From positions 13,888,001-13,952,000 of the forward strand of contig OZ059900.1 in NCBI GenBank assembly GCA_964057225.1: a stretch of 64,000 nucleotides of DNA. Direction: 5' to 3'. Made by a program: the position numbers and the translations under genes. Positions 17,060-64,000 of this stretch are shown here, one piece after another; position 1 is the first letter of the stretch, and each line of letters opens with the position of its first letter. The notes under the pieces were generated by a model. That model was given only the letters and a program-made list of their open reading frames with translations. It ran no database searches and had not been told where the DNA came from. Source of the DNA: Auanema rhodensis (lineage: Eukaryota; Animalia; Nematoda).

Positions 17060-19315
17060 TCATTGAACATCATATGCATAGGTATTATTGTTAAATCTCT
17101 CCACCCAATATGGCTGAATATGCACGTCGTCTGTGTTGATTACTTCAAATTCAGGAAGGTCAGGTAAATCTGGTGATTCAATTCGATCTAACGTTTCTGG
17201 CTCTAGCTTAACAGTGGGTGGTTCAAGATTGTCATCAGTTGTACCAATCCAAATAGGAATTGCATATTGATGCTCATGTCCATCCAGAAGTGTCACATCA
17301 ACTATTAGAGAATATCTGAGAATCAAAACATTCCAATAACTGATTTCAATGCATGGAGGAATTGTATGTGGAATATGTACTGCCCAAACGTGTGGCCAAT
17401 TTGATTTCTGCTTTGGAGCAGGTTGCATGGAAACCGTACGCTCCACGCAAAAACTGTCGTTTGATGATAGTTCAGGCCGTCTTATTCTGCGATGTTGCAT
17501 AATCATGAAACGGACGTTTCGAATATTTTTAACGTTTGTTAGGGTGATGTAAGCATGTTTACCACGTTGAAAACATCGCTGACTCATGCTTACGCTAATA
17601 GATCCAAGCTGATCTCTATATTCATTCTGATATTCTTGTTTGGCCCATGTATCCACTGCTCTGTCTACAAATACTTCCGCATCAACAGTAACATAATTTT
17701 TGCGCCACGACATCATTGAGGCGCAGCAGATGTATCTAATATCGTCACCTATTGACGGAGGAAGAATTTTCGAGTCCAACTGTGATTTGGCAAAGGGCAA
17801 CGAAATTTTAACAGAATGACGTCCTGGACTAAACGATGATGTTTGATTACTTGAAACGATGCTTTTAAAACGGATGAACTCGTACCAAGTGTGACCTGCT
17901 CTTACTTCGCCTCGAAACAACAAACGCAGATTTCGTAAGCGTTCTGAATTTCGGCTGTTAATATCAAAAATGACTTTGGCATAAGAATTTTCTAAATCTC
18001 CGTTGTGTTTAGTCTTGATGAAAATCTTATGTAAATCAATCGAATGACTGGGATCCGACTTTGCATCTTCATAATCATCGCTCAATTCTGAATCATCATC
18101 GTCATCATCTTGACTGTCATCATCTTCATCCATAGCTCTTTCAAATAGAAAGCGATCTTTTGATTCTCTTTCACGACCTTGTTCCTTAATTTCAAATTTT
18201 TTTAAACAGTGAAATGAAATAAAAATACTTTAATAAAGCTTGAGCTGATGATTATTGGAATTGTATATACAAATGGTTTTTTATGATCAAGTAATTTGAA
18301 ATCTACAACCAGTTCGTAGTTAATGCGTAAAACATTCCACAACGTCATTGGAATAGTTATTGGAATATTTGATGGTATCTCCAATTCACATTCTCCAGCC
18401 TTCACGCTAGAATTCTCTATACACTTACTGGCTAACACCTCTTTCCTAGTTTGCATTAGTTGATAATGTCCAGGATCAGGATCTCTGTAATACACACATT
18501 ATCTAGTTTTTACTAATTTTAACAAGAATACCGAATATGTAAGTACTGCACTAACAACATGCGAACGCTTTTGAGTTTCGTTTCGCTGCTAATGAACCAA
18601 CAACATTTTGCAAGTTCATTTTGTGTGAAAACTCCTTTATTTATATAAATATCAACATTTAATGGCGTGCACTTTCTTTAAATAATTAAATTAATATTAT
18701 TTAAGAATAGAACATACTTATGGGCCCACGATCCATGTCCAATGCATTTATTCAGTTTATAACGCAGTTGATAGCTGGCAATATGCGGCATTTTAAGAGA
18801 CAATTCTCGATTTATAATAAATTTCTTTTCAATAAAATTATTTTGATGCCAAGGATTAACACTGGCTTGCACAGAATATTCTACAAATCGGTATTTTCCT
18901 ATCTGCATTGTAGGAGGAAAGCGTGATAACCACACATCAACAGATACTTCACTTTCTGTGGCTTCTATATAAAAATGAATGTTAGTGTATTGTGTTAAAG
19001 AAAACAACTAATTTACCATGAGGAGATACAAGAGTCCACACTTGCTCATATAAAAATTCGTAGAGTAGCCGATTTTTTTCTTTAACATATCCGCGGAATA
19101 TGACTTGACACGAAACAACAAAATCTGTTGGATTTTCCACAGTAACTTGTGCCACCAACTGATTATCTAATCGATTGTTGAAGTAATCTTTTACGGTCAG
19201 ATTAGTAACAGCTGGCAGAGCAGTTGTAGTAACCATCAAGCATAAAATGAGCAAATGTTTTTCTTCGAAACTTAGCTTTGTCTGAAGAAGCCTACTCACA
19301 AAATGAATTATGCAT
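17060..19315 (-). CDS. Arrestin-domain (alpha-arrestin/ARRD-like) protein with two tandem N+C modules
   Basis: Exons from MHNSFSVTNL... through IFRG...YEF...PPT...Y and IPSNIPITIPMTLWNVLRINYEL splice in frame (FIK|EQGRERE...) into a 1.1 kb terminal exon that repeats the pattern (LFRG...YEF...LPPS...Y; IPHTIPPCIEISYWNVLILRYSL...IPIWIGT). Confidence 0.75.
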
Positions 19316-35399: not shown

Positions 35400-38300
35400 C
35401 TATGGAGCATATGTAGCTGTCGCTGAACATGTGCGATAAAATACCAAATTGTATTCTTCGTAGCTTCCATGCATATTATCCTCAGTCATAAAACATGATT
35501 CAGTAGTATAACCAGCACGGAAACGGTAAGCAGATTGCAGATATTGTCCAACAGATATTTCAAATGTCATATCATCAATCTGAAGATTGAATTATATTAT
35601 TATGATTCATTCTGATAATTATACAAACCTGATAAGCTGTTGGATAACCTCCATTTTCCGTAGAAGACGCAGAATCCACGTTACAAAGCTTGTTTTGGAA
35701 GTTTGCCAAATAACCACAGTTATTTACAACTTTACCCTTAGGTATACTGAAACAAAATGATTTGCAAACATCTTTTGCTTAATAGACTTACTTGAAACGA
35801 ATATCAATAGATATTGTAGGTAAATAAGGAGATACCGGTATATACAAATTATAACGATTACGTTTAAGACTACAACTTCCTTCCACGCAATAACGACTAT
35901 CAATTGTTGCATTCAAGGCGGGAATCTCAATAGTTACTCCATCCGAAAATGATTTTCCAATGCCATTCAAAATATTAGGGGCATTGCGTATTATTGCATC
36001 AGATTTTTTGCTGTCCATTAAATCCATTTGATATTGGAATTGGAACTGAAACAAACGAGATTTTCTTCGCACGTAATAAACTTTGATACCTCATCATGAG
36101 ATACTGCTCCAGGTACAACACTATCAGGAAAGTCCATATTCGGTCGACAACAATAAGAATGACAATTTCCAAGCGGACACTGGAAGCCGACCAGCGGCGG
36201 TGCGTCTGGTTGTGACATTCCAGGAGGTTTAACCATTTCTCCAATATCTTCATTACGTTCATTTCCGCTCATACCACCACGTCCATTTGGCCCATAATAA
36301 ATAGAAAAATTGCGATTGTACCAGTCCAAAATATAAAGACCCGACATTGCTAAGAGACAAGCAGTCATCACAAATACTAATGCGACTACTGTCCCTTGCG
36401 TTATTTTCGAATTACAAATTGGATCTCCTCGATGACAATTTGATCGACATTCCTAAAAAAATAATCATAAGCTACTTTTTGATCTGAATGCATACCCTCC
36501 GACGATGGAAAATATTGCTTGAAACAACTGAGCTAAGACTCAAAACACTTTTAGAATCCATGTCGGTACTAGAGAGATTTGTTCCCGAAGTGCTCAAAAG
36601 TTTTTTCCGTCGAGCATACATTGCTAGTCGTTGACTGATTTCTTCGACCTTATCATCAATCTTGCTATCCAGATCACCAGTGAGACGACATAGTTCTTTA
36701 GTTGCTAGCAGTGTTTCGTAGAAAACACGGTTTTCGTCAACAGTCAGATATGCACCAATATCGTGTACGGCTTCCGGTAAAACCTGAGCAAAACTTTGTT
36801 ATAAACATTTGAGGAAAAAAAACTTACAGTTGCAAGCTCTTGTGCAATCAAACCAGTTTTGTGTCGTTGCTTTTCTGGAAGACCCCATTTGTCCGCTACT
36901 TCTTGTTTATAAGAATAGCCAACAACATGAAGTTTACGAACATTTTCTAAAGCTTGAATCTGATCTTTCTCTGTAAAATTTTCCTTCAATGTAGCATCTG
37001 ACGGTGTTATTAGCTAAAATTTGAAAAATTAATGCAAATATTCTTATTAATCTCTCCAACCTTTCCAACATGATATATATCTCCGTGAACTGTTAATTTA
37101 GCATCACCAACTGTCATATCCGACCCCACAGCTACAGGATTTTGAGTATAGAGTAGCGAGCCATTGCGATTCCACTGAGCTTCTACTTCTGGTGGTTCAA
37201 AGGAACCAGGGTTTGTTGCCTGCAATATAGTTAATGGTAAAACAACGAGTTGTAAACTGCTATATTCTCTATCTTGAAAGCTGAGAGATGTGAATAATCA
37301 TACAATTAAACTCACTCGAACTATGACTTTTTCAGACTGATACGATTGAATAATATGTGTCTGTCCATCGTCCATAAGAGCTACTAATCGAATAACCAAT
37401 AAGAAATACTTCTGATCTGGATTTGGCTTATAGTTTTTTCTTTGATTATTAAGTGTTGTGTCTTGGAAATGAAGACGGGGTACAGTAACTTTAGTCATTT
37501 GACGTTCTATAATCTTGATTCTGAAAATTATTTGTTAAATTTAATAAATGAATAATAGATGCATACGTCACAGGATCATGGTTGATTGGTTTCCTGTCGT
37601 TTTGAGATTGTTTTATTTGAATCTCGCAACTGGGCATTTCGGCTTTGACTCCACAGAAGACAAGCTTGAACTCGTTGATAGGAATAAGTTGTCTATCCTT
37701 CTTTACATACACTGGAGGCAAGTTGTCTATAGCTTCGATATGAACAGAAATCTAGAAATTTCAATGAAAATGATGTTATATCTGTGTTTGAAAACAAACC
37801 TGGAAATGATTCTTCTTCTGATTTACAAAGCATTGATCAGCCCCAGAATAGTTAAATCCTTTATCAGCAACAACATGCACTTGTAATTTTTCCAGTTCAT
37901 TTCGCTCAGCATCATATAAAGGCAACCATTTATCTTCTTCAAACTTTGAAAACTTGATGACAGGATTGTGAGGTAGATGCGGTTCAGTTTTCATATATCC
38001 GTTTGTTATCATGTTAATTGATTGACTATATTCACCGCCACCCGGTTGAGATATTTTCATAACTGGAGGATTTATTAAACGTTGCTGTTGTGAGCTGGCA
38101 GCGATATCGGGTGATATCACATTGAGTTGGCGCTGCTGCGAATGAGATGAATTCATAACACTTCCAGTTTGACCACAAGGTGGAGAAGGTCCAGATTGAG
38201 GTGGTGCCATGCTTTGGGGTTGATTAGACAGCTGAGATGGAGCCATGCCATATTGTCCATTTGATTGATCTGGAGGTGCTCCTCCCGTCATATTTAGTGA

Positions 38301-39954
38301 TGATATCCCATTATTCATGCCTAATGGAGGTGATTCCATGTTATAAACTGTTTTCTTATCAATATCATCCAAATCATCTTCAAGGCGTGGTCTTTTTCTG
38401 AAACATTTGATTAAAAAAATATTTAAGTAATTTCATACCGGATAAATGGTTCCTGCGACCCAATCATACCATAAAAGCTTAAATCATCAGGATAGCCACT
38501 ATTGGATTGATATCCAGATCTTCTCAAATGAGATTTTCGTGATCCTGGCTGCTGTGCGCCATTAATCTTAAAAATAATATAATAAGTGAGACATGGTACA
38601 TTTGATGTCTTACATCAGGTATTTGCTGATTTGGCTGTTCATGTTGAGCATAAGGAGTTACATAGCAATCTCCATCAGGCACATTCATGCCATGTGTGTT
38701 ATGCATCGGCCTGTAAATAGAATGAATATAACATTTTAGTTAATTATAATATACTACCGAGAATACATTGCTATCTGATCTGGTTGTGACACCATCATAC
38801 CGTTGCCTAAATCTGGTACTCCAAGTATTAAACTCTGATGACTTGGGTTATTTGGATTATATGCTGAAATCAAATTAATTCTAATTCTAATCTCATTATA
38901 TTTATACTCACCGCCACTTGAATAGCTAGAAAAGGTGTCAGGGCTGTAAGGAGGATCAGAATTGCTTGAAGGTGAAGCCGAAGAGCCATTTCCAGATATG
39001 TCGGTTATAGGAGGAGAGTCCGGCAAGCGACCATTATTCTGAATAAAATAGCAATGAAAAACACAGACAAATTAATTTGTAAATGTTATAAGACTACGAC
39101 TTACTTCGCACATCAAATGATGAGGCACTTGAATATGATTAACACGATTTGACATGTAATTGTGTTGCATGTTTTGTTGAGGATGATTAACTCCTTGATT
39201 TTGTTGATTATGAGGATTATTGTTATTAGGTCCTAGAGGTACGTGTGATATCTCGTTATTGTTTTGTACATTTGAACGCTGTGATCGATGAGCCTCTTGG
39301 TGTGTTGGCTGTGCAGGGCTTTCGACGGGTGTGCTGAAATACAAAAAAATATGTTCTTGTATTCAAGTTTTTCAATTTTTTTTCTTATCGGAATTCTACA
39401 AAAGTGCGGGAGTGCTTGCTATTTTAGATGTTTAATCTTTATTTAAACATTCACATAAACCTTTAAAAGCAACTGTAGCAAAAACTTTTTTTTATTTTAT
39501 CATGGCAATTAATTATATCCATATTTTAAAAATAATAATTAAAATTAAATAAAAACGTTGCTCGATTATTAAAACTAAATTAGATATGTGAGAATAATTC
39601 ATGAATATGAAACAAGATCACAATTAAAATAATTAATTTCCAACTTTTTGCAGTTTTTATTACTTGGAGCTAAAGTTTTTCATAGTTTCAGAGTAAAATG
39701 CGCATAAAAAATGACGTTCGTTGTTGTGCAGTGAGAAAGTTTAAGAAAGGACTAAAAATGTAGCTTACGTGTTATCAGCCGATAAAAATTGTATTATGTC
39801 AAACGACGATACGTCTGTAAAATCAGATAAGGGATCGGCAAGCGGCTCATCGAGAACTAAAAGATAATTTTAAGTAATTTGAATATCAAATTGTTTTTAA
39901 TTTCAAAATAATCTATAATTTACCTTTATAGCTACGCCGTTTATTATTAGCCAT
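35400..39954 (-). CDS. MYRF: Myelin regulatory factor (Ndt80 DNA-binding domain, intramolecular chaperone autoprotease, TM helix, luminal domain); myrf-1/myrf-2 family
   Basis: [17 protein letters not shown]...[24 protein letters not shown]...[34 protein letters not shown], a TM helix, and C-terminal YNLVFYRTC. Confidence 0.95.
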
Positions 39955-44093: not shown

Positions 44094-45896
44094 ATGAAGA
44101 GTGTTTTACTATTCTTCGTACTGATAATAGGGACAATTGCACCTCCTCCTCAAAGGGCCATTCAACCTGAGGTTATTACATATTTTTTATTCATTATTCA
44201 TCATTTCAATATTGTATTAATTCTTTTTGTGCAGACTTCAACTGAACAACCTGTTGTACATGAAACTTCTCAAAATCCCCAAACTGATAATGATCAGAAT
44301 TCAAATCAGGAGGCTGGAAAGAGAAATGTATGTTCTAGAATTGAATTGTTTATAAAAATTTTTGCTCATATGTGTATTTCAGCCTTATGAATTAACATAC
44401 AACAAGTACCTAGAGAAAGTTGTTGAAATTTTGGAAAGTGATGAAAATTTCAGGGCCCGTCTGAAAGATATGCCCGAAGCTGATATTAAGGTTCTTGAAA
44501 CCTAGTAACGTTTAATAATTTTTTTTTGTTAGGAAGGAAAGATAGCTGAACATTTTGATGAATTATCTCACGAAGTTTTTGATAAGTTACATAAAGTAAA
44601 ATTAGAAGAAATCGAAAATTTGAGACAACAAATTGAAAAGCAAATTGAGGTATGTTTGGACTTTACTTTTTCAAAGAAAGTTTTCTATTCAATGTATATT
44701 AACAATATTAAAGGCTGACAAAGGCGCTCATAACGTAAAAATTCCTGAGCATCTTGATTTGAAGCAATGGGAGAAATTTGGTAAAGAAGATTTGCGTATG
44801 TTAATTAAAAAGGTTTTGTTCTCTATATTAAGTTGAAAAAAATAATTTTCGATTTAGACTGTTGCTGATATTGAAGAAATTGATAAGCAGCGCCGCGAAG
44901 AATTCAAGGAATATGAGATGAAGAAGAGAGCAGAACGGGATCATAAATTTGCCCAAATGGACGAAAAGGTTTCTTGTTCAAAGTAATGCTGTTAAATGTT
45001 TTTATAGGAAAGACTTGCTGCTTTAAAAGAAGAAGAAGAATTGAAGCAAAAGCATAATACACACGAAAAGTTGAAGCACCCAGCTAGTCGCGATCAGTTA
45101 GAAGAAGTTTGGGAAGAAAGAGATCAGGTATCAAGAGAATAATACTAATTTCTTTCAAAAATTATAATAGATGAATAAAGATTCTTTCGATCCAAGAACT
45201 TTCTTCGGACTTCACGATCTAAATGGAGATGGTTAATCATCTGATACAAATAATATTCAGTTTTTTGTTTTAGGCTTTTGGAATTCTGAAGAACTTGAAG
45301 CATTGTTCAATCTTGAACTTGAGAAGATGTACAATGACACTAATCCTGATTTTGATGCTCGGGAAAAGTAATTGCAGTAATCAACCACGTTTCACTAATT
45401 CTTTTAGATTCGAAGAAATGTATCGCATGCGTGAGCATGTTGTAAAACAGATGGATAAAGATGGGGATCGTCTTATATCTTTACAAGAGTTTTTGCAGGT
45501 GATATTAAGTTTTATAAATTATATATCAAATGAAAAAAAAAGAGATATAAATTATTAAGTTAACTAAAGTTTGATTTCTTATCTATTTGCTTAGGATACT
45601 GAAGCACAAACAGCTGGACAAGATCCTGGATGGAAAGATTTGGGTCAAGAACAAGTATACTCAGATAAAGAATTGCAAGACTACGAACAACAATTCGCAA
45701 AAGAAATGGGTAATAAATACAATTAAAGTCATAGTTCAGATATAATTTAGGTTGGGGAGAACATGCATATGATACAACAACAGCTCATCCTAATCCTGCT
45801 CATCCAGTAAGCTTTTATCTCAACAGAAGTGATAAGTCACTATTAATATTTCAGAATCTTGGCAATGAAGTGAATGTACACCCAGCTCAACCTGCT

Positions 45897-45928
<32 letters not shown>

Positions 45929-45950
45929 TCAGCAACAGCAACAGCAACAT

Positions 45951-45991
<41 letters not shown>

Positions 45992-46013
45992 TCAGCAACA
46001 GCAACAGCAACAG

Positions 46014-46072
<59 letters not shown>

Positions 46073-46170
46073 GGTAAAATGCTTAATAGAATATCAATTT
46101 ATTTTCAAATTTTAAGCCACAAGTCTTGCCTCAAGAAAAAGTAACCAAAGACCCATCTTATGGCATTTAA
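44094..46170 (+). CDS. nucb-1: Nucleobindin (EF-hand Golgi calcium-binding protein) with C-terminal polyQ
   Basis: Signal peptide, YNKYLEKVVEILESD, HEKLKHPASRDQLEEVWEE, FDPRTFFGLHDLNGDG, MREHVVKQMDKDGDRLISLQEF; ends KDPSYGI*. Confidence 0.95.
45897..46073 (+). repeat. Coding CAG/CAA repeat (59 codons, Gln with 4 His interruptions)
   Basis: (CAGCAA)n hexamers with CAT interruptions followed by a pure (CAA)n run, inside a nucb-1 exon. Confidence 0.95.
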
Positions 46171-50563: not shown

Positions 50564-54598
<4,035 letters not shown>

Positions 54599-55931
54599 AT
54601 TACAGATGCTCAAAAATTTCATATCATATTTGAATTCCAGTTGTATTCTAACGTGTAATTAGTGAGAAAACTAGTATTCCGCCTTACTTTTCTGCTTGAA
54701 TTTCTTATCCCAATACTATTTTGAGCATGAAATATAACTCGTTGCGGGTCATTCATTCTCTTTTTACTATGCGAAGATATGTGTATTATTGAAAATATTT
54801 TAAGATTCATTGTTTTCTACTTTGTTCTTGTCCTCAATATATTTATTCAGATATGTGTTTATTAATAATGTGCAGTACATATATAAGAAGGTATATGTGC
54901 TTGTTTTCAAAAAGTTTATTGTAATATTTTTGATTATTTATTCAAATTTTTGAATCATATCCATCTTTTTTAGTATTGCCTTTTTCTATTGTGATGAACC
55001 TAACAGATTTCTTAAGAAAACAAATCTAACTTTATTCGATGATTTAACCATTCTTCAGACGTTATGTCTGCGTGATTTTTAATATAAATTCATTTGTGCT
55101 CAAGAATTACGTACAATCAAATATTGCAAATGTCTTCATTATCCCCTTGTTCCTCAAAAATTGATTGTTTTTATTAAGTATAATTCTTTGAATTTATTTC
55201 TGTAATAGACTAAAGGATACTTGTTATGCTGATGTTTTGTGTAGAGTACTCTGTTTTTTCTGAAATATTTATTTTATCTTCTGTTGTCTTTGTGCAGTTA
55301 TTGATTTTTTTCCCAGATTGATTTCTAAATGGTAATTCAGCAACGGAACTGAAATCATACTTGGAGATTTAGAACGGAAATTGGTCTTATCGTTTTTTTT
55401 TGTTTAGGAAAATAAAAGTTGATCTTATTGCACGAAAATATCTTATTTTTTCTTCACGTGCTACCCCAAACAAGCTACAGCATTTATTCAGAAAATGTAA
55501 GCCATACTACTTTAATTTGAAAAGTTATTTAATAATGAAACATACATTTTAATATTACAAAAATATCAAAAATCATTTTAAATCATTATATTCCTATAAT
55601 ATGATAGAAATAAAAAAATTCTCGACCAAACTCTTTGTCGTGTGTTATTTTGTTTATAAATGCTGTATTACTAAACGATAAAAGAAATAGTAATCACCAG
55701 CATTTATTTATATTTAAATAGATAACGCATAAGATTAGATCAACTTGACCTTTACCTCCAACTATAACTAGAACTTTGGCTTCTTGTTTGTGAAAATGTT
55801 TCTAGAGCCTTTTTTGGAGAAAGCAATATAGCGAAGCTAGCTATAGTTGCTTTTTCATGCGTTTCATTAAAAATTTAAGTTAACTTGTCTGTGATTATTC
55901 ATTTTAGAAGATTGAACTCGACTACAACGCT

Positions 55932-56360
55932 ATGACAAACAATTCTTCTAGACACTATACCTTATGGTCAGCTTATATTCAGATTGTAATACTAGATGTA
56001 AGATTTTTAAATATTCACTTTTCTCAAGCTCAATCTAACAAAGGTTTACTTGCAGAACGGTCGAATTCAGACATATAGAATTAAACGGAGTGAGCCGATG
56101 TCGAAGATTTTCAATCACTATTTGGAAAGACGTTGCACCGCTAACTTTGAAATGACGTTAGATTATCACTTCAATGTGTTAGTTGGATTATATTTATTTA
56201 GCTTCTGGTACGATGGGCATAGGCTCAACGGAATTGAGACACCATACAGCTTAGTATTGCACAGCGGAGACACGATTGAGGTAATTTTCAGGAACCTGCA
56301 AGTTGTGGTATGAAAAAAAACTTTCAGGTTCGAAGAACTGAAACATCTGATTTCTATTAG
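55932..56360 (+). CDS. SUMO-like protein lacking C-terminal Gly-Gly, copy 1 (92 aa, 4 exons)
   Basis: Three GT-AG introns give MTNNSSRHYTLWSAYIQIVILD|NGRIQTYRIKRSEPMSKIFNHYLERRCTANFEMT|FWYDGHRLNGIETPYSLVLHSGDTIE|VRRTETSDFY*. It aligns by eye to SUMO (YI.I.V, F+VK...M.K+...Y..R, F.+DG.R+N...TP..L.+...D.IEV). Confidence 0.85.
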
Positions 56361-57755
56361 ACTGTTAATATATTCGACGTATTTAACCACTTCTTGTTGT
56401 TTCAAGGTTCCAAGATTTCTTAAACTGTTATTCTCGTTAAGATATTTCAAAAATTTACTTAGTTGAACAAATTGTTTTGATAACTCAACATGATTTCATC
56501 TCAATTTGGACAAATGTTAAGATATCGTTTATTAATTACCTGTGTGAGTTTACTTGAAACTATTTTGAAATCAACAATATGTTGTTTGATAAAACCATAT
56601 CTATATATCTATATATATATCGACTATTGTTTTAATGTTTTCACTCGCATCTTAAAAAACTCGCAATCATGAACATTCTTTCAAAATTTGTCTGTCAAAC
56701 CATTGTTGAAACGTTTCTATATATTTTTTGAATCTCAACAAGTAAGCCTCAAAGGCAAATCACCAAAATCCTTGTTTAACGACTTCAACAATTGATTCTT
56801 ATGCCATTTTTTTTAATTAAAGAGTTTTATAAGATATTATTATAACTATTATTATTAATATTCATTTATAATTATCTTTTTCAAACTGCATACTCGCACA
56901 ATAAAATTATTAAAGTTTGGTGTTCACATCTCTTTGAACTAGATGTTCCAAGGTGAGGACATAGAAATAAGCAAATTCTCGGATTGACCAAGCTGACTCA
57001 TGTTTTCTTCATAGTTACTAGAATTCAAATATGTTTCAGCTGCATATACTAAACAGAAAAAAATAACATAATTGAAAGAATTTCTCCAAATCCTACAGAC
57101 TTTTTGTATTTTCAATAAACTTTTTCACAATAAATATTGTTCAAAAAAGTTGTCAAAGTTTTCATTATCACAACTGTGAGATTTTGATTGTGTTCCTTGC
57201 TTAGTCATGCAGGTTCGGCACTTTTTATGAATTTCTTGACTTTTTGAAATCTCAGATCTGCGCTCTCACACAGCTCTGTCATAGTTTTCATAGTTTTTAC
57301 TGACAACGATTTGAATAGGTAGCGTGTCTCATCATGTTCAGTTTCCATACTCTCTCGAAGGTTCTGCTAACTGTTTCTCCAAAAATGATTGTAATCCTCA
57401 ACCACTTGCTAATTTGAAGCTCCTCTTGTAATTTTAAATAAATTTATAACAAAACTCTTTGTCGTGTGTTATTTTGTTTATAAATGCTGTATTACTAAAC
57501 GATAAAAGAAATAGTAATCACCAGCATTTATTTATATTTAAATAGATAACGCATAAGATTAGATCAACTTGACCTTTACCTCCAACTATAACTAGAACTT
57601 TGGCTTCTTGTTTGTGAAAATGTTTCTAGAGCCTTTTTTGGAGAAAGCAATATAGCGAAGCTAGCTATAGTTGCTTTTTCATGCGTTTCATTAAAAATTT
57701 AAGTTAACTTGTCTGTGATTATTCATTTTAGAAGATTGAACTCGACTACAACGCT

Positions 57756-58184
57756 ATGACCAACAATTCTTCTAGACACTATACCTTATGGTCAGCTTAT
57801 ATTCAGATTGTAATACTAGATGTAAGATTTTTAAATATTCACTTTTCTCAAGCTCAATCTAACAAAGGTTTACTTGCAGAACGGTCGAATTCAGACATAT
57901 AGAATTAAACGGAGTGAGCCGATGTCGAAGATTTTCAATCACTATTTGGAAAGACGTTGCACCGCTAACTTTGAAATGACGTTAGATTATCACTTCAATG
58001 TGTTAGTTGGATTATATTTATTTAGCTTCTGGTACGATGGGCATAGGCTCAACGGAATTGAGACACCATACAGCTTAGTATTGCACAGCGGAGACACGAT
58101 TGAGGTAATTTTCAGGAACCTGCAAGTTGTGGTATGAAAAAAAACTTTCAGGTTCGAAGAACTGAAACATCTGATTTCTATTAG
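57756..58184 (+). CDS. SUMO-like protein lacking Gly-Gly, copy 2
   Basis: Same protein as copy 1; codon 2 is ACC instead of ACA. Confidence 0.85.
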
Positions 58185-59578
58185 ACTGTTAATATATTCG
58201 ACGTATTTAACCACTTCTTGTTGTTTCAAGGTTCCAAGATTTCTTAAACTGTTATTCTCGTTAAGATATTTCAAAAATTTACTTAGTTGAACAAATTGTT
58301 TTGATAACTCAACATGATTTCATCTCAATTTGGACAAATGTTAAGATATCGTTTATTAATTACCTGTGTGAGTTTACTTGAAACTATTTTGAAATCAACA
58401 ATATGTTGTTTGATAAAACCATATCTATATATCTATATATATATCGACTATTGTTTTAATGTTTTCACTCGCATCTTAAAAAACTCGCAATCATGAACAT
58501 TCTTTCAAAATTTGTCTGTCAAACCATTGTTGAAACGTTTCTATATATTTTTTGAATCTCAACAAGTAAGCCTCAAAGGCAAATCACCAAAATCCTTGTT
58601 TAACGACTTCAACAATTGATTCTTATGCCATTTTTTTTAATTAAAGAGTTTTATAAGATATTATTATAACTATTATTATTAATATTCATTTATAATTATC
58701 TTTTTCAAACTGCATACTCGCACAATAAAATTATTAAAGTTTGGTGTTCACATCTCTTTGAACTAGATGTTCCAAGGTGAGGACATAGAAATAAGCAAAT
58801 TCTCGGATTGACCAAGCTGACTCATGTTTTCTTCATAGTTACTAGAATTCAAATATGTTTCAGCTGCATATACTAAACAGAAAAAAATAACATAATTGAA
58901 AGAATTTCTCCAAATCCTACAGACTTTTTGTATTTTCAATAAACTTTTTCACAATAAATATTGTTCAAAAAAGTTGTCAAAGTTTTCATTATCACAACTG
59001 TGAGATTTTGATTGTGTTCCTTGCTTAGTCATGCAGGTCGGCACTTTTTATGAATTTCTTGACTTTTTGAAATCTCAGATCTGCGCTCTCACACAGCTCT
59101 GTCATAGTTTTCATAGTTTTTACTGACAACGATTTGAATAGGTAGCGTGTCTCATCATGTTCAGTTTCCATACTCTCTCGAAGGTTCTGCTAACTGTTTC
59201 TCCAAAAATGATTGTAATCCTCAACCACTTGCTAATTTGAAGCTCCTCTTGTAATTTTAAATAAATTTATAACAAAACTCTTTGTCGTGTGTTATTTTGT
59301 TTATAAATGCTGTATTACTAAACGATAAAAGAAATAGTAATCACCAGCATTTATTTATATTTAAATAGATAACGCATAAGATTAGATCAACTTGACCTTT
59401 ACCTCCAACTATAACTAGAACTTTGGCTTCTTGTTTGTGAAAATGTTTCTAGAGCCTTTTTTGGAGAAAGCAATATAGCGAAGCTAGCTATAGTTGCTTT
59501 TTCATGCGTTTCATTAAAAATTTAAGTTAACTTGTCTGTGATTATTCATTTTAGAAGATTGAACTCGACTACAACGCT

Positions 59579-60007
59579 ATGACAAACAATTCTTCTAGAC
59601 ACTATACCTTATGGTCAGCTTATATTCAGATTGTAATACTAGATGTAAGATTTTTAAATATTCACTTTTCTCAAGCTCAATCTAACAAAGGTTTACTTGC
59701 AGAACGGTCGAATTCAGACATATAGAATTAAACGGAGTGAGCCGATGTCGAAGATTTTCAATCACTATTTGGAAAGACGTTGCACCGCTAACTTTGAAAT
59801 GACGTTAGATTATCACTTCAATGTGTTAGTTGGATTATATTTATTTAGCTTCTGGTACGATGGGCATAGGCTCAACGGAATTGAGACACCATACAGCTTA
59901 GTATTGCACAGCGGAGACACGATTGAGGTAATTTTCAGGAACCTGCAAGTTGTGGTATGAAAAAAAACTTTCAGGTTCGAAGAACTGAAACATCTGATTT
60001 CTATTAG
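59579..60007 (+). CDS. SUMO-like protein lacking Gly-Gly, copy 3
   Basis: Same as copy 1. Confidence 0.85.
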
Positions 60008-61402
60008 ACTGTTAATATATTCGACGTATTTAACCACTTCTTGTTGTTTCAAGGTTCCAAGATTTCTTAAACTGTTATTCTCGTTAAGATATTTCAAAAA
60101 TTTACTTAGTTGAACAAATTGTTTTGATAACTCAACATGATTTCATCTCAATTTGGACAAATGTTAAGATATCGTTTATTAATTACCTGTGTGAGTTTAC
60201 TTGAAACTATTTTGAAATCAACAATATGTTGTTTGATAAAACCATATCTATATATCTATATATATATCGACTATTGTTTTAATGTTTTCACTCGCATCTT
60301 AAAAAACTCGCAATCATGAACATTCTTTCAAAATTTGTCTGTCAAACCATTGTTGAAACGTTTCTATATATTTTTTGAATCTCAACAAGTAAGCCTCAAA
60401 GGCAAATCACCAAAATCCTTGTTTAACGACTTCAACAATTGATTCTTATGCCATTTTTTTTAATTAAAGAGTTTTATAAGATATTATTATAACTATTATT
60501 ATTAATATTCATTTATAATTATCTTTTTCAAACTGCATACTCGCACAATAAAATTATTAAAGTTTGGTGTTCACATCTCTTTGAACTAGATGTTCCAAGG
60601 TGAGGACATAGAAATAAGCAAATTCTCGGATTGACCAAGCTGACTCATGTTTTCTTCATAGTTACTAGAATTCAAATATGTTTCAGCTGCATATACTAAA
60701 CAGAAAAAAATAACATAATTGAAAGAATTTCTCCAAATCCTACAGACTTTTTGTATTTTCAATAAACTTTTTCACAATAAATATTGTTCAAAAAAGTTGT
60801 CAAAGTTTTCATTATCACAACTGTGAGATTTTGATTGTGTTCCTTGCTTAGTCATGCAGGTTCGGCACTTTTTATGAATTTCTTGACTTTTTGAAATCTC
60901 AGATCTGCGCTCTCACACAGCTCTGTCATAGTTTTCATAGTTTTTACTGACAACGATTTGAATAGGTAGCGTGTCTCATCATGTTCAGTTTCCATACTCT
61001 CTCGAAGGTTCTGCTAACTGTTTCTCCAAAAATGATTGTAATCCTCAACCACTTGCTAATTTGAAGCTCCTCTTGTAATTTTAAATAAATTTATAACAAA
61101 ACTCTTTGTCGTGTGTTATTTTGTTTATAAATGCTGTATTACTAAACGATAAAAGAAATAGTAATCACCAGCATTTATTTATATTTAAATAGATAACGCA
61201 TAAGATTAGATCAACTTGACCTTTACCTCCAACTATAACTAGAACTTTGGCTTCTTGTTTGTGAAAATGTTTCTAGAGCCTTTTTTGGAGAAAGCAATAT
61301 AGCGAAGCTAGCTATAGTTGCTTTTTCATGCGTTTCATTAAAAATTTAAGTTAACTTGTCTGTGATTATTCATTTTAGAAGATTGAACTCGACTACAACG
61401 CT

Positions 61403-61831
61403 ATGACCAACAATTCTTCTAGACACTATACCTTATGGTCAGCTTATATTCAGATTGTAATACTAGATGTAAGATTTTTAAATATTCACTTTTCTCAAGC
61501 TCAATCTAACAAAGGTTTACTTGCAGAACGGTCGAATTCAGACATATAGAATTAAACGGAGTGAGCCGATGTCGAAGATTTTCAATCACTATTTGGAAAG
61601 ACGTTGCACCGCTAACTTTGAAATGACGTTAGATTATCACTTCAATGTGTTAATTGGATTATATTTATTTAGCTTCTGGTACGATGGGCATAGGCTCAAC
61701 GGAATTGAGACACCATACAGCTTAGTATTGCACAGCGGAGACACGATTGAGGTAATTTTCAGGAACCTGCAAGTTGTGGTATGAAAAAAAACTTTCAGGT
61801 TCGAAGAACTGAAACATCTGATTTCTATTAG
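61403..61831 (+). CDS. SUMO-like protein lacking Gly-Gly, copy 4
   Basis: Codon 2 ACC. A private G>A change lies in intron 2; it appears as V>I only in the unspliced ORF track. Confidence 0.85.
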
Positions 61832-63225
61832 ACTGTTAATATATTCGACGTATTTAACCACTTCTTGTTGTTTCAAGGTTCCAAGATTTCTTAAACTGTT
61901 ATTCTCGTTAAGATATTTCAAAAATTTACTTAGTTGAACAAATTGTTTTGATAACTCAACATGATTTCATCTCAATTTGGACAAATGTTAAGATATCGTT
62001 TATTAATTACCTGTGTGAGTTTACTTGAAACTATTTTGAAATCAACAATATGTTGTTTGATAAAACCATATCTATATATCTATATATATATCGACTATTG
62101 TTTTAATGTTTTCACTCGCATCTTAAAAAACTCGCAATCATGAACATTCTTTCAAAATTTGTCTGTCAAACCATTGTTGAAACGTTTCTATATATTTTTT
62201 GAATCTCAACAAGTAAGCCTCAAAGGCAAATCACCAAAATCCTTGTTTAACGACTTCAACAATTGATTCTTATGCCATTTTTTTTAATTAAAGAGTTTTA
62301 TAAGATATTATTATAACTATTATTATTAATATTCATTTATAATTATCTTTTTCAAACTGCATACTCGCACAATAAAATTATTAAAGTTTGGTGTTCACAT
62401 CTCTTTGAACTAGATGTTCCAAGGTGAGGACATAGAAATAAGCAAATTCTCGGATTGACCAAGCTGACTCATGTTTTCTTCATAGTTACTAGAATTCAAA
62501 TATGTTTCAGCTGCATATACTAAACAGAAAAAAATAACATAATTGAGAGAATTTCTCCAAATCCTACAGACTTTTTGTATTTTCAATAAACTTTTTCACA
62601 ATAAATATTGTTCAAAAAAGTTGTCAAAGTTTTCATTATCACAACTGTGAGATTTTGATTGTGTTCCTTGCTTAGTCATGCAGGTCGGCACTTTTTATGA
62701 ATTTCTTGACTTTTTGAAATCTCAGATCTGCGCTCTCACACAGCTCTGTCATAGTTTTCATAGTTTTTACTGACAACGATTTGAATAGGTAGCGTGTCTC
62801 ATCATGTTCAGTTTCCATACTCTCTCGAAGGTTCTGCTAACTGTTTCTCCAAAAATGATTGTAATCCTCAACCACTTGCTAATTTGAAGCTCCTCTTGTA
62901 ATTTTAAATAAATTTATAACAAAACTCTTTGTCGTGTGTTATTTTGTTTATAAATGCTGTATTACTAAACGATAAAAGAAATAGTAATCACCAGCATTTA
63001 TTTATATTTAAATAGATAACGCATAAGATTAGATCAACTTGACCTTTACCTCCAACTATAACTAGAACTTTGGCTTCTTGTTTGTGAAAATGTTTCTAGA
63101 GCCTTTTTTGGAGAAAGCAATATAGCGAAGCTAGCTATAGTTGCTTTTTCATGCGTTTCATTAAAAATTTAAGTTAACTTGTCTGTGATTATTCATTTTA
63201 GAAGATTGAACTCGACTACAACGAT

Positions 63226-63654
63226 ATGACAAACAATTCTTCTAGACACTATACCTTATGGTCAGCTTATATTCAGATTGTAATACTAGATGTAAGATTT
63301 TTAAATATTCACTTTTCTCAAGCTCAATCTAACAAAGGTTTACTTGCAGAACGGTCGAATTCAGACATATAGAATTAAACGGAGTGAGCCGATGTCGAAG
63401 ATTTTCAATCACTATTTGGAAAGACGTTGCACCGCTAACTTTGAAATGACGTTAGATTATCACTTCAATGTGTTAGTTGGATTATATTTATTTAGCTTCT
63501 GGTACGATGGGCATAGGCTCAACGGAATTGAGACACCATACAGCTTAGTATTGCACAGCGGAGACACGATTGAGGTAATTTTCAGGAACCTGCAAGTTGT
63601 GGTATGAAAAAAAACTTTCAGGTTCGAAGAACTGAAACATCTGATTTCTATTAG
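63226..63654 (+). CDS. SUMO-like protein lacking Gly-Gly, copy 5
   Basis: Same protein; private C>A two bases before the ATG (63224). Confidence 0.85.
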
Positions 63655-64000
63655 ACTGTTAATATATTCGACGTATTTAACCACTTCTTGTTGTTTCAAG
63701 GTTCCAAGATTTCTTAAACTGTTATTCTCGTTAAGATATTTCAAAAATTTACTTAGTTGAACAAATTGTTTTGATAACTCAACATGATTTCATCTCAATT
63801 TGGACAAATGTTAAGATATCGTTTATTAATTACCTGTGTGAGTTTACTTGAAACTATTTTGAAATCAACAATATGTTGTTTGATAAAACCATATCTATAT
63901 ATCTATATATATATCGACTATTGTTTTAATGTTTTCACTCGCATCTTAAAAAACTCGCAATCATGAACATTCTTTCAAAATTTGTCTGTCAAACCATTGT

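Follow-up and report, generated by a model that had tools for sequence, protein, structure and literature searches.

The stretch of Auanema rhodensis DNA analysed here (the window, 64,000 nucleotides long) closes with a tandem array whose units, arranged head to tail and running past the window end, each carry a small gene for a 92-aa SUMO-like protein. The features of the locus, in window positions, are the following:

55312..55496, + strand: exon 0, a non-coding 5' exon; the 3' end is exact (GT donor at 55497), the 5' end approximate
55497..55907, + strand: intron 0, 411 nt, GTAAGC...TTTTAG
55628..64000, + strand: tandem array of a 1823/1824-bp unit, 4.6 units with five gene copies within the window
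55908..56360, + strand: copy 1, comprising the remainder of the 5' UTR (55908-55931) and then the coding exons
55932-55997, 56056-56156, 56202-56280 and 56328-56360 (including the stop codon), + strand: coding exons of copy 1
56361..56886, + strand: 3' UTR, to the extent covered by RNA contigs, whose ends fall at 56806-56886
56887..57434, no strand: remaining spacer of the unit, without gene, RNA family, Pfam domain or RNA contig
57756..58184, + strand: coding region of copy 2, B type, codon 2 ACC
59579..60007, + strand: coding region of copy 3, A type
61403..61831, + strand: coding region of copy 4, B type, with a private G>A at 61653 in intron 2
63226..63654, + strand: coding region of copy 5, A type, with a private C>A at 63224, two bases 5' of the ATG

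Since the array continues off the end of the window, the total copy number is not readable from it and five is a lower bound. The five start codons lie at 55932, 57756, 59579, 61403 and 63226 (spacings of 1824/1823/1824/1823 bases), and when the four coding exons are applied to each, copies 1-5 yield one identical 92-aa protein ending TETSDFY. The sequence-only reading from which we started, which had counted at least five intact copies with retained splice sites and the same product, was therefore right in this respect. Comparison of the units revealed five variable sites per 1824 bases. Two of them fall in the spacer; the 5' UTR and intron 2 have one each, and the fifth is a synonymous change in codon 2 (ACA/ACC). 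The unit types alternate A-B-A-B-A, the alternating sites being codon 2 and a 1-bp indel in the spacer, and differences private to single copies occur at 63224, 61653 and 62547. With units more than 99.7% identical, it could be argued that the array is an artefact of assembly and that the genome has one or two copies; such private differences and so regular an A/B alternation, however, do not come from repeating one unit during assembly, and we consider this explanation very unlikely. Either a block of two units was amplified very recently or gene conversion keeps the array uniform. The array offers a dated case of very recent gene amplification, with the original first exon present only at the first copy. 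Small ORFs on both strands of the spacer had no Pfam match and the spacer had no Rfam match; as its distal part also lacks RNA contigs, a second gene or RNA at this place was rejected.

Evidence of transcription was taken from assembled contigs of four runs belonging to one study. The library type was guessed as RNA, for which the spliced joints argue. In all four runs the three coding introns are absent from the contigs, removed exactly as predicted, with GT..AG joints at 55997/56056, 56156/56202 and 56280/56328. The spliced contigs have depths of 13-52 across the runs, show no sequence difference from copy 1 and contain one 3' exon structure only; an AATAAA is located at 56900-56905. On the 5' side, acceptor 55908 is joined in each of the four runs to at least 182 foreign letters, the last 30 of which match the window solely at 55467-55496, which is the end of exon 0. 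This exon is unique in the window and sits upstream of the array. The gene is thus transcribed and spliced as predicted, and its mRNA begins in a unique non-coding exon outside the repeated units. The earlier description of a four-exon gene holds for the coding part, but a fifth, non-coding 5' exon ending at 55496 has to be added. Because the left edge of the array falls inside intron 0, the later units possess the acceptor without exon 0. One contig (X1) extends 3895 nt upstream of the acceptor, and the mRNA may originate by read-through of the upstream kinase gene, in which case the small ORF might be poorly translated. The flanking kinase was seen to have short exons only.

Exon 0 contains an in-frame TAA about 80 bases before its end and no ATG after it, so that the 92-aa protein is free-standing, as had been supposed; this call assumes an exon 0 colinear with the genome over 80 bases or more, as contig extensions of 182-255 letters suggest. 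The same in-frame stop led us to reject a larger protein of the Rad60/Esc2/NIP45 type, in which upstream exons would encode the rest and the SUMO-like domain would form the C-terminus. Such a protein would be in keeping with a frame that is open over the 24 bases from acceptor to ATG and over 27 codons back into exon 0, with the upstream reach of the contigs, and with the presence of SUMO-like domain 2 of NIP45 among the PDB matches (E 1.6e-7). Yet the upstream gene, which has its own stop at 54598, codes for a kinase carrying PKK domains and not for a RENi-type protein. The 92-aa protein, for its part, finds its best matches in true SUMOs, with the precursor tail included in the alignment. 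We hold a larger protein to be extremely improbable. The RENi family is recognised by two C-terminal SUMO-like domains in a larger protein; here a single domain was found.

The sole transcript start seen is exon 0; copy 1 is therefore the one copy linked to a known start, and amplification need not mean higher dosage. The high dosage assumed by the sequence-only reading does not follow from these data, in which the contigs, too, carry letters of the copy-1 type. The array would nevertheless be a dosage device if all copies were expressed, either from a primary transcript running through it or from a start of their own in each unit. Exon 0 or a spliced leader would then be spliced to each TTTTAG acceptor, as happens to downstream genes in nematode operons, whose trans-splicing is established in these animals. 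The acceptor and 280 bases 5' of it are kept in every unit, and a separate low-depth contig (55650-55861), lying within the repeated part of intron 0, is present in two runs. On the other hand, positions 56892-57434, between copies, have no contig in any run, the single upstream junction seen leads to exon 0, and the contigs show codon 2 ACA and C at 55930, like copy 1, with no B-type variant reported, although contigs drop minor variants and the evidence they give against expression of all copies is weak. Taking both sides together, we regard all-copy expression as doubtful, but as an alternative deserving attention.

The 92-aa protein matches Pfam Rad60-SLD (PF11976) over residues 28-84 (31.9 bits, cut-off 23.8, E 1.2e-7), while Ubiquitin (PF00240) remained below threshold (13.6 bits, cut-off 25.4). 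A phmmer search of the PDB found SUMO2/3 and Drosophila Smt3 (E about 5e-9 to 2e-8); C. elegans SMO-1 (5xqm) scored 31.4 bits as compared to 38-39 bits for SUMO2. The proposed colinearity with SUMO is confirmed by the SUMO2 alignment, which reaches the last residue (QQQTGGVY vs RRTETSDFY). AlphaFold with a 23-sequence alignment, consisting of SUMOs only, returned a beta-grasp model with the beta-beta-alpha-beta-beta-beta order, mean pLDDT of 79.9 and a core of about 90; from the single sequence the model was poor (mean pLDDT 50.8). Foldseek best matches of the model are SUMO structures (TM about 0.9 by target, rmsd 1.0-1.3). The HMM search and structure prediction by which the SUMO similarity was to be checked thus both speak for it.

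Conservation and pI were judged against a comparison set of 22 SUMOs. All seven invariant core columns are kept (K32, K39, F57, D60, G61, T69 and D79), and identity to the SUMO consensus amounts to 56% over residues 33-48 of the beta2-alpha1 stretch, one of the best conserved parts, and 71% in beta5. Mean core identity to the SUMOs is, however, about 34%, as opposed to 39-61% among the SUMOs themselves, which makes the 92-aa protein the most divergent sequence in the comparison. Its pI is 7.9 (mature SUMOs: 4.6-5.7 in 20 of 22) and the acidic loop of the SUMO consensus, EMEDGD, reads VLHSGD, so that the reported loss of the acidic patch is substantiated. In the groove between beta2 and alpha1, sequence comparison indicates that K32, K39, Y44 and R47 are kept, that F29 is Tyr, and that L40, M41 and C45 are changed conservatively. 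Two residues invariant in SUMOs are replaced: Thr35 by Glu and Gln87, which precedes Gly-Gly, by Glu. The view that the SIM-binding beta2-alpha1 stretch is retained is accordingly borne out for the stretch as a whole, but not for Thr35, which lies beside the groove; because of this replacement an intact SIM groove is not a given. Judging from the sequence, the two exchanges may alter both the SIM groove and enzyme contacts. As far as alignments and the predicted model go, the 92-aa protein is a very divergent SUMO-like member with the SUMO fold.

Where all 22 SUMOs have the Gly-Gly, the alignment puts Ser89-Asp90, and no glycine follows G78; the C-terminus is Thr-Ser-Asp-Phe-Tyr, where SUMO precursors have Thr-Gly-Gly-x-x. 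From the end of exon 3 onwards, none of the + strand frames of the unit encodes a GG dipeptide, and an alternative exon supplying it was therefore rejected. The Gly-Gly is genuinely absent, as first noticed. SENP maturation, adenylation by E1 and thioester transfer all require an exposed Gly-Gly. By the established SUMO pathway, its loss would leave the protein capable of neither maturation nor conjugation, with non-covalent action as the only one.

A word-based search with the 92-aa query through 5.8 billion proteins gave no candidate, which says little, as the collection is without the Auanema rhodensis genome or close relatives; the neighbouring 356-aa ORF has its best match at 53% identity, with Diploscapter, Caenorhabditis and Oesophagostomum at 44-48%. 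An exhaustive HMMER search of 1.84 billion proteins produced 254 matches, among them no close relative or orthologue, only ordinary SUMOs of 30-42% identity. The top scores belong to multi-SUMO repeat proteins, scores being summed over the repeats, and the best single-domain matches are ordinary SUMOs of a chytrid, Lichtheimia, Mixia, a plant and a eukprot gene model. Taken together, the closest database entries are ordinary fungal, plant and animal SUMOs, with no preference for a particular clade. The only hint of a canonical SMO-1 in Auanema rhodensis is that its chromosomes are stained by an anti-SMO-1 antibody (PMC9713428).

The lack of any relative in the protein searches fits also with an expressed but functionless relic, i.e. 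a SUMO duplicate which lost its Gly-Gly, has been drifting and was recently copied by unequal crossing-over, its transcription being incidental, for instance a read-through from the kinase gene. Gly-Gly loss and the exchanges T35E and Q87E at invariant sites, in the most divergent of the sequences compared, are in keeping with such a relic, contig X1 reaches far enough upstream to enter the kinase gene, and copies 2-5 have no exon 0. What such a relic explains poorly is a 92-codon frame open over four coding exons with canonical splice sites at about 34% identity to SUMO: with some 8% of random codons being stops (an estimate for 31% G+C), a fully drifted frame would stay open less than once per thousand. 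The seven invariant core residues retained, a fold predicted with confidence when SUMOs are aligned, and spliced contigs in all the runs likewise tell against it. We therefore consider a relic unlikely, if still worth keeping in mind.

We favour, as probably correct, the explanation that the gene encodes a lineage-specific, fast-evolved, free-standing SUMO paralogue, a 92-aa beta-grasp protein predicted to be non-conjugatable and to have a non-covalent role. The most likely mode would be binding of SIM-bearing proteins in the beta2-alpha1 groove, or binding to the back of the E2 enzyme UBC-9; either could modulate SUMO-dependent interactions or compete with them, and the near-neutral charge would favour acidic or phosphorylated partners. 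A more specific version sees in the protein an antagonist or adaptor dedicated to the SUMO pathway and acting non-covalently, which arose in the Auanema lineage, binds SIM proteins or UBC-9 and was amplified by selection for dosage; this seems to us improbable. Such selection might act, for example, in a conflict over germline chromatin or over segregation of the X chromosome, which is unusual in Auanema worms. The roles suggested in the sequence-only reading, those of a SUMO decoy, a selfish element or its suppressor, or a germline regulator, are hypothetical.

Caenorhabditis elegans, yeast and Drosophila are described as having a single SUMO gene each (PMC5646861), and given the single gene in C. 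elegans an expressed, non-conjugatable second SUMO-derived gene is unexpected in a rhabditid nematode. With canonical SUMOs (SUMO2/3, Smt3, SMO-1) the 92-aa protein has in common the fold, the length, colinearity from beta1 to the precursor tail, the invariant core residues and the basic/aromatic beta2-alpha1 stretch. It departs from them in Ser-Asp for Gly-Gly, Glu for Gln and for the Thr before alpha1, VLHSGD for EMEDGD, pI of 7.9 for about 5, and an identity of 30-42%. It resembles the Rad60/Esc2/NIP45 (RENi) domains in the Rad60-SLD match and in lacking Gly-Gly; those domains, which act non-covalently (Esc2 is a cofactor of the SUMO E2 enzyme, PMC7849368), are paired at the end of larger proteins, whereas the domain described here is single and free, and is preceded by an in-frame stop. 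SUMO-like domains without Gly-Gly had been said to exist only inside larger proteins, which is incorrect in view of free plant SUMO-v and the human SUMO alpha isoforms (PMC6117578, PMC6629649, PMC9911741). The human isoforms SUMO1-alpha and SUMO2-alpha cannot be conjugated and were put forward as binders of SIM proteins or of SUMO enzymes (PMC9911741), but they arise by exon skipping from normal genes and their fold is predicted to be disturbed, in contrast to the separate gene and complete predicted fold described here. Plant SUMO-v is described as a non-conjugatable SUMO analogue and is thought to act non-covalently via SIMs (PMC6117578, PMC6629649). Across plants SUMO-v is conserved, and its closest affinity is said to be with the RENi family; the 92-aa protein, a nematode orphan with a tandemly repeated gene, is closest to true SUMOs, and the likeness of the two does not imply common descent. 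The 92-aa protein represents a natural experiment on the binding-only role of a free SUMO fold; if functional, it would stand as an animal equivalent of plant SUMO-v and supply a ready-made probe for steps that depend on SIMs or UBC-9.

The SUMO-like gene is part of a tandem array, which was delimited by repeat comparison and is laid out in the window as follows.

55628 to the window end, + strand: head-to-tail tandem array, unit length 1823 or 1824 bases
55932, 57756, 59579, 61403 and 63226, + strand: start codons of gene copies 1-5
55932-55997, 56056-56156, 56202-56280 and 56328-56360, + strand: coding exons of copy 1, according to the four-exon model of the sequence-only reading

When the four coding exons of that model were applied to each copy, all five yielded an identical product of 92 aa, which bears out the earlier claim of an array of at least five intact genes coding for one protein. 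Only 5 variable sites in 1824 positions distinguish the units:

C/A, two bases 5' of the ATG of copy 5
ACA/ACC in codon 2, synonymous
G/A, intron 2 of copy 4
A/G, spacer of copy 4
indel of one base, spacer

The codon 2 site and the spacer indel alternate in the order A-B-A-B-A, the letters standing for the two unit types, which shows that a dimer of two units was amplified. Judging by the unit sequences, either the amplification is very recent or uniformity is maintained by gene conversion. The spacer holds short ORFs only, without Pfam matches, and gave no match in Rfam.

Evidence for transcription comes from assembled contigs of four runs of one study, the library type being guessed as RNA; of the words sampled from the gene region, about half were present in these runs. 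Three joints, 55997 to 56056, 56156 to 56202 and 56280 to 56328, all of the GT..AG type, were found in each of the four runs, and contigs lacking introns are as expected from RNA. Placed on one unit, the contigs showed zero differences from copy 1. They pass the stop codon and end at 56806-56886, while an AATAAA is located at 56900, past their 3' ends; no RNA contigs from the four runs covered 56892-57434. The 3' UTR of each copy contains an AT-rich 12-base tandem repeat (56827-56875 and equivalents), and several RNA contigs stop at or just before it.

On the 5' side all contigs depart from the unit at 55908, immediately 3' of a TTTTAG acceptor. The last 30 contig letters before the acceptor match the window only at 55467-55496, where they are followed by GTAAGC, which places a 5' exon of the mRNA (exon 0, non-coding) outside the array. 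The left edge of the array falls inside the first intron (intron 0, 411 bases). The three coding introns are spliced as the sequence-only reading had predicted, but its gene model has to be extended by one 5' exon beyond the four proposed.

Exon 0 precedes copy 1 only; copies 2-5 possess the acceptor and the 280 bases before it, without exon 0. At both transcribed variable sites the contigs, which drop minor variants, carry the letters of copy 1. Expression of copies 2-5 could proceed by read-through, with either exon 0 or a spliced leader as the splice partner. A separate contig of 206-208 letters and a depth of about 3 was present in two of the four runs at 55650-55861, in the repeated part of intron 0, which has equivalents in each unit. 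It is unjoined to the main mRNA contig and may represent unspliced precursor, or else weak transcription from or starting within the units.

Upstream of the array, the following gene was recognized by its domains and has its own stop.

~50564-54598, + strand: multi-exon STE20-type kinase gene of the SLK/LOK type, with protein kinase and PKK (polo kinase kinase) domains

One contig, X1 (4659 letters, carrying the SUMO-like mRNA), has 3895 letters upstream of the acceptor, enough to enter the kinase gene, so that the two genes may be co-transcribed or linked by read-through; X1 itself may be either a genuine read-through RNA or overlapping transcripts joined in assembly. Between the acceptor and the ATG the SUMO-like frame has no stop, and in exon 0 it stays open for another 27 codons upstream before reaching a TAA. 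There is no ATG between this TAA and 55932, and the only ATG in the ~185 bases before 55496 starts an ORF of seven codons. The 92-aa protein is accordingly predicted to be free-standing, provided that exon 0 follows the genome without a break over at least 80 bases, as contig extensions of 182-255 letters suggest.

Elsewhere in the window, a long CAG/CAA-type repeat at 45843-46115, reading as poly-Gln on the + strand and as poly-Leu on the - strand, probably lies inside an exon coding for a Gln-rich protein. At 37776-39344 (- strand) there are consecutive ORFs with a high content of Gln, Pro and Asn; by eye, the end stretch of the last one is similar to a DNA-binding domain of the NDT80/MYRF type, but this ORF had no Pfam match.

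The 92-aa protein matched the Pfam family Rad60-SLD, of the SUMO fold, over residues 28-84 (31.9 bits, cut-off 23.8), so the similarity expected from the first reading was recovered by HMM search; against the Pfam ubiquitin family it scored under the threshold. Of the proteins with solved structures, SUMO2/3 and Drosophila Smt3 matched best by sequence (E ~5e-9 to 2e-8), with C. elegans SMO-1 (5xqm) somewhat below them at 31.4 bits. Structure prediction, likewise proposed earlier as a check, gave a poor AlphaFold model from the single sequence (pLDDT 50.8) and a beta-grasp when the alignment of 22 SUMOs was supplied (mean pLDDT 79.9, core ~90), a model that leans on SUMOs because the input alignment is made of them. 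In Foldseek the best matches of this alignment-based model were SUMO chains, with rmsd of 1.0-1.3. By sequence and predicted fold, we assign the protein to the SUMO fold family.

Alignment with the 22 SUMOs of fungi, plants and animals showed that the 92-aa protein agrees with SUMOs in every one of the seven invariant columns (K32, K39, F57, D60, G61, T69 and D79). Conservation is highest in beta5 (71% identity to the SUMO consensus) and in residues 33-48, the loop and helix forming one wall of the SIM groove (56%), and lowest in the tails. Where at least 80% of SUMOs share a residue, most replacements in the protein are conservative (F to Y, L to I, M to F, C to L, F to Y, M to L); four are not, namely T35 to E, E76 to H, Q87 to E and that of the Gly-Gly. 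Over the core, the protein is on average 34% identical to SUMOs, with a maximum of 37%, against averages of 39-61% among SUMOs themselves, which indicates a long branch, and the pI is 7.9 versus 4.6-5.7 in 20 of the 22 mature SUMOs. Since at such divergence the four-exon frame is open, splice sites are canonical and core residues are kept, the sequence points to past purifying selection on the fold, which is not proof of present function.

In the alignment with the SUMO2 precursor, Ser-Asp stands at the position of the Gly-Gly. This alignment extends to the final residue (SUMO2 DTIDVFQQQTGGVY, 92-aa protein DTIEVRRTETSDFY), hence the Gly-Gly was replaced by substitution and not lost by truncation. 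Between the end of exon 3 and the end of the unit, none of the + strand frames contains a GG dipeptide, and the RNA contigs show a single 3' exon structure; an alternative downstream exon within the unit supplying Gly-Gly, the escape left by the earlier proposal, is thereby dismissed. An exposed Gly-Gly is the substrate of SENP processing, E1 adenylation and thioester transfer, and the 92-aa protein is therefore predicted not to be conjugatable by the known route.

A word-based protein search with the 92-aa sequence returned zero relatives. An exhaustive HMMER search of 1.84 billion representatives gave 254 matches, none closer than 42% identity. The top totals belong to multi-SUMO repeat proteins, whose scores are additive over repeats, and single-domain matches are all at or below 46 bits, the best of them having Gly-Gly ends and coming from scattered taxa. 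Gly-Gly is missing from a minority of the small matches, which comprise di-SUMO-like proteins, fragments and genes that were probably mis-modelled. No recognisable orthologue was found in annotated Caenorhabditis, Diploscapter and strongylid proteomes. The window also contains a single ORF of 356-357 aa with an acidic N-terminus at 17060-18133 (- strand), whose Caenorhabditis and Oesophagostomum relatives carry an arrestin C-terminal-like domain. Its nearest database match has only 53% identity (Diploscapter, Caenorhabditis and Oesophagostomum 44-48%), which places the source of the window among rhabditid nematodes, so the proteome of this species and its close relatives are absent from the protein collections; the empty search for relatives of the 92-aa protein is only partly informative, the collections being without close relatives of this genome.

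That the product is a free SUMO paralogue, expressed and lacking Gly-Gly, has good support. It would bind partners non-covalently and modulate SUMO-dependent interactions, an inferred mechanism with modest support. The decoy, selfish-element and high-dosage roles put forward in the sequence-only reading are conjectural. One SUMO gene is described in C. elegans (PMC5646861), and a second, SUMO-derived gene is therefore new for nematodes of that group. The protein is neither a conjugatable SUMO nor a member of the RENi proteins (Rad60/Esc2/NIP45), whose SUMO-like domains are used non-covalently, Esc2 being an E2 enzyme cofactor (PMC7849368). It is placed here among non-conjugatable SUMO paralogues, a kind already known, which contradicts the premise that SUMO-like domains without Gly-Gly are confined to larger proteins. 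Plant SUMO-v has been described as a non-conjugatable SUMO analogue with SIM contacts as its presumed mode (PMC6117578, PMC6629649), and the human isoforms SUMO1-alpha and SUMO2-alpha, proposed binders of SIM proteins or SUMO enzymes, are non-conjugatable too (PMC9911741).
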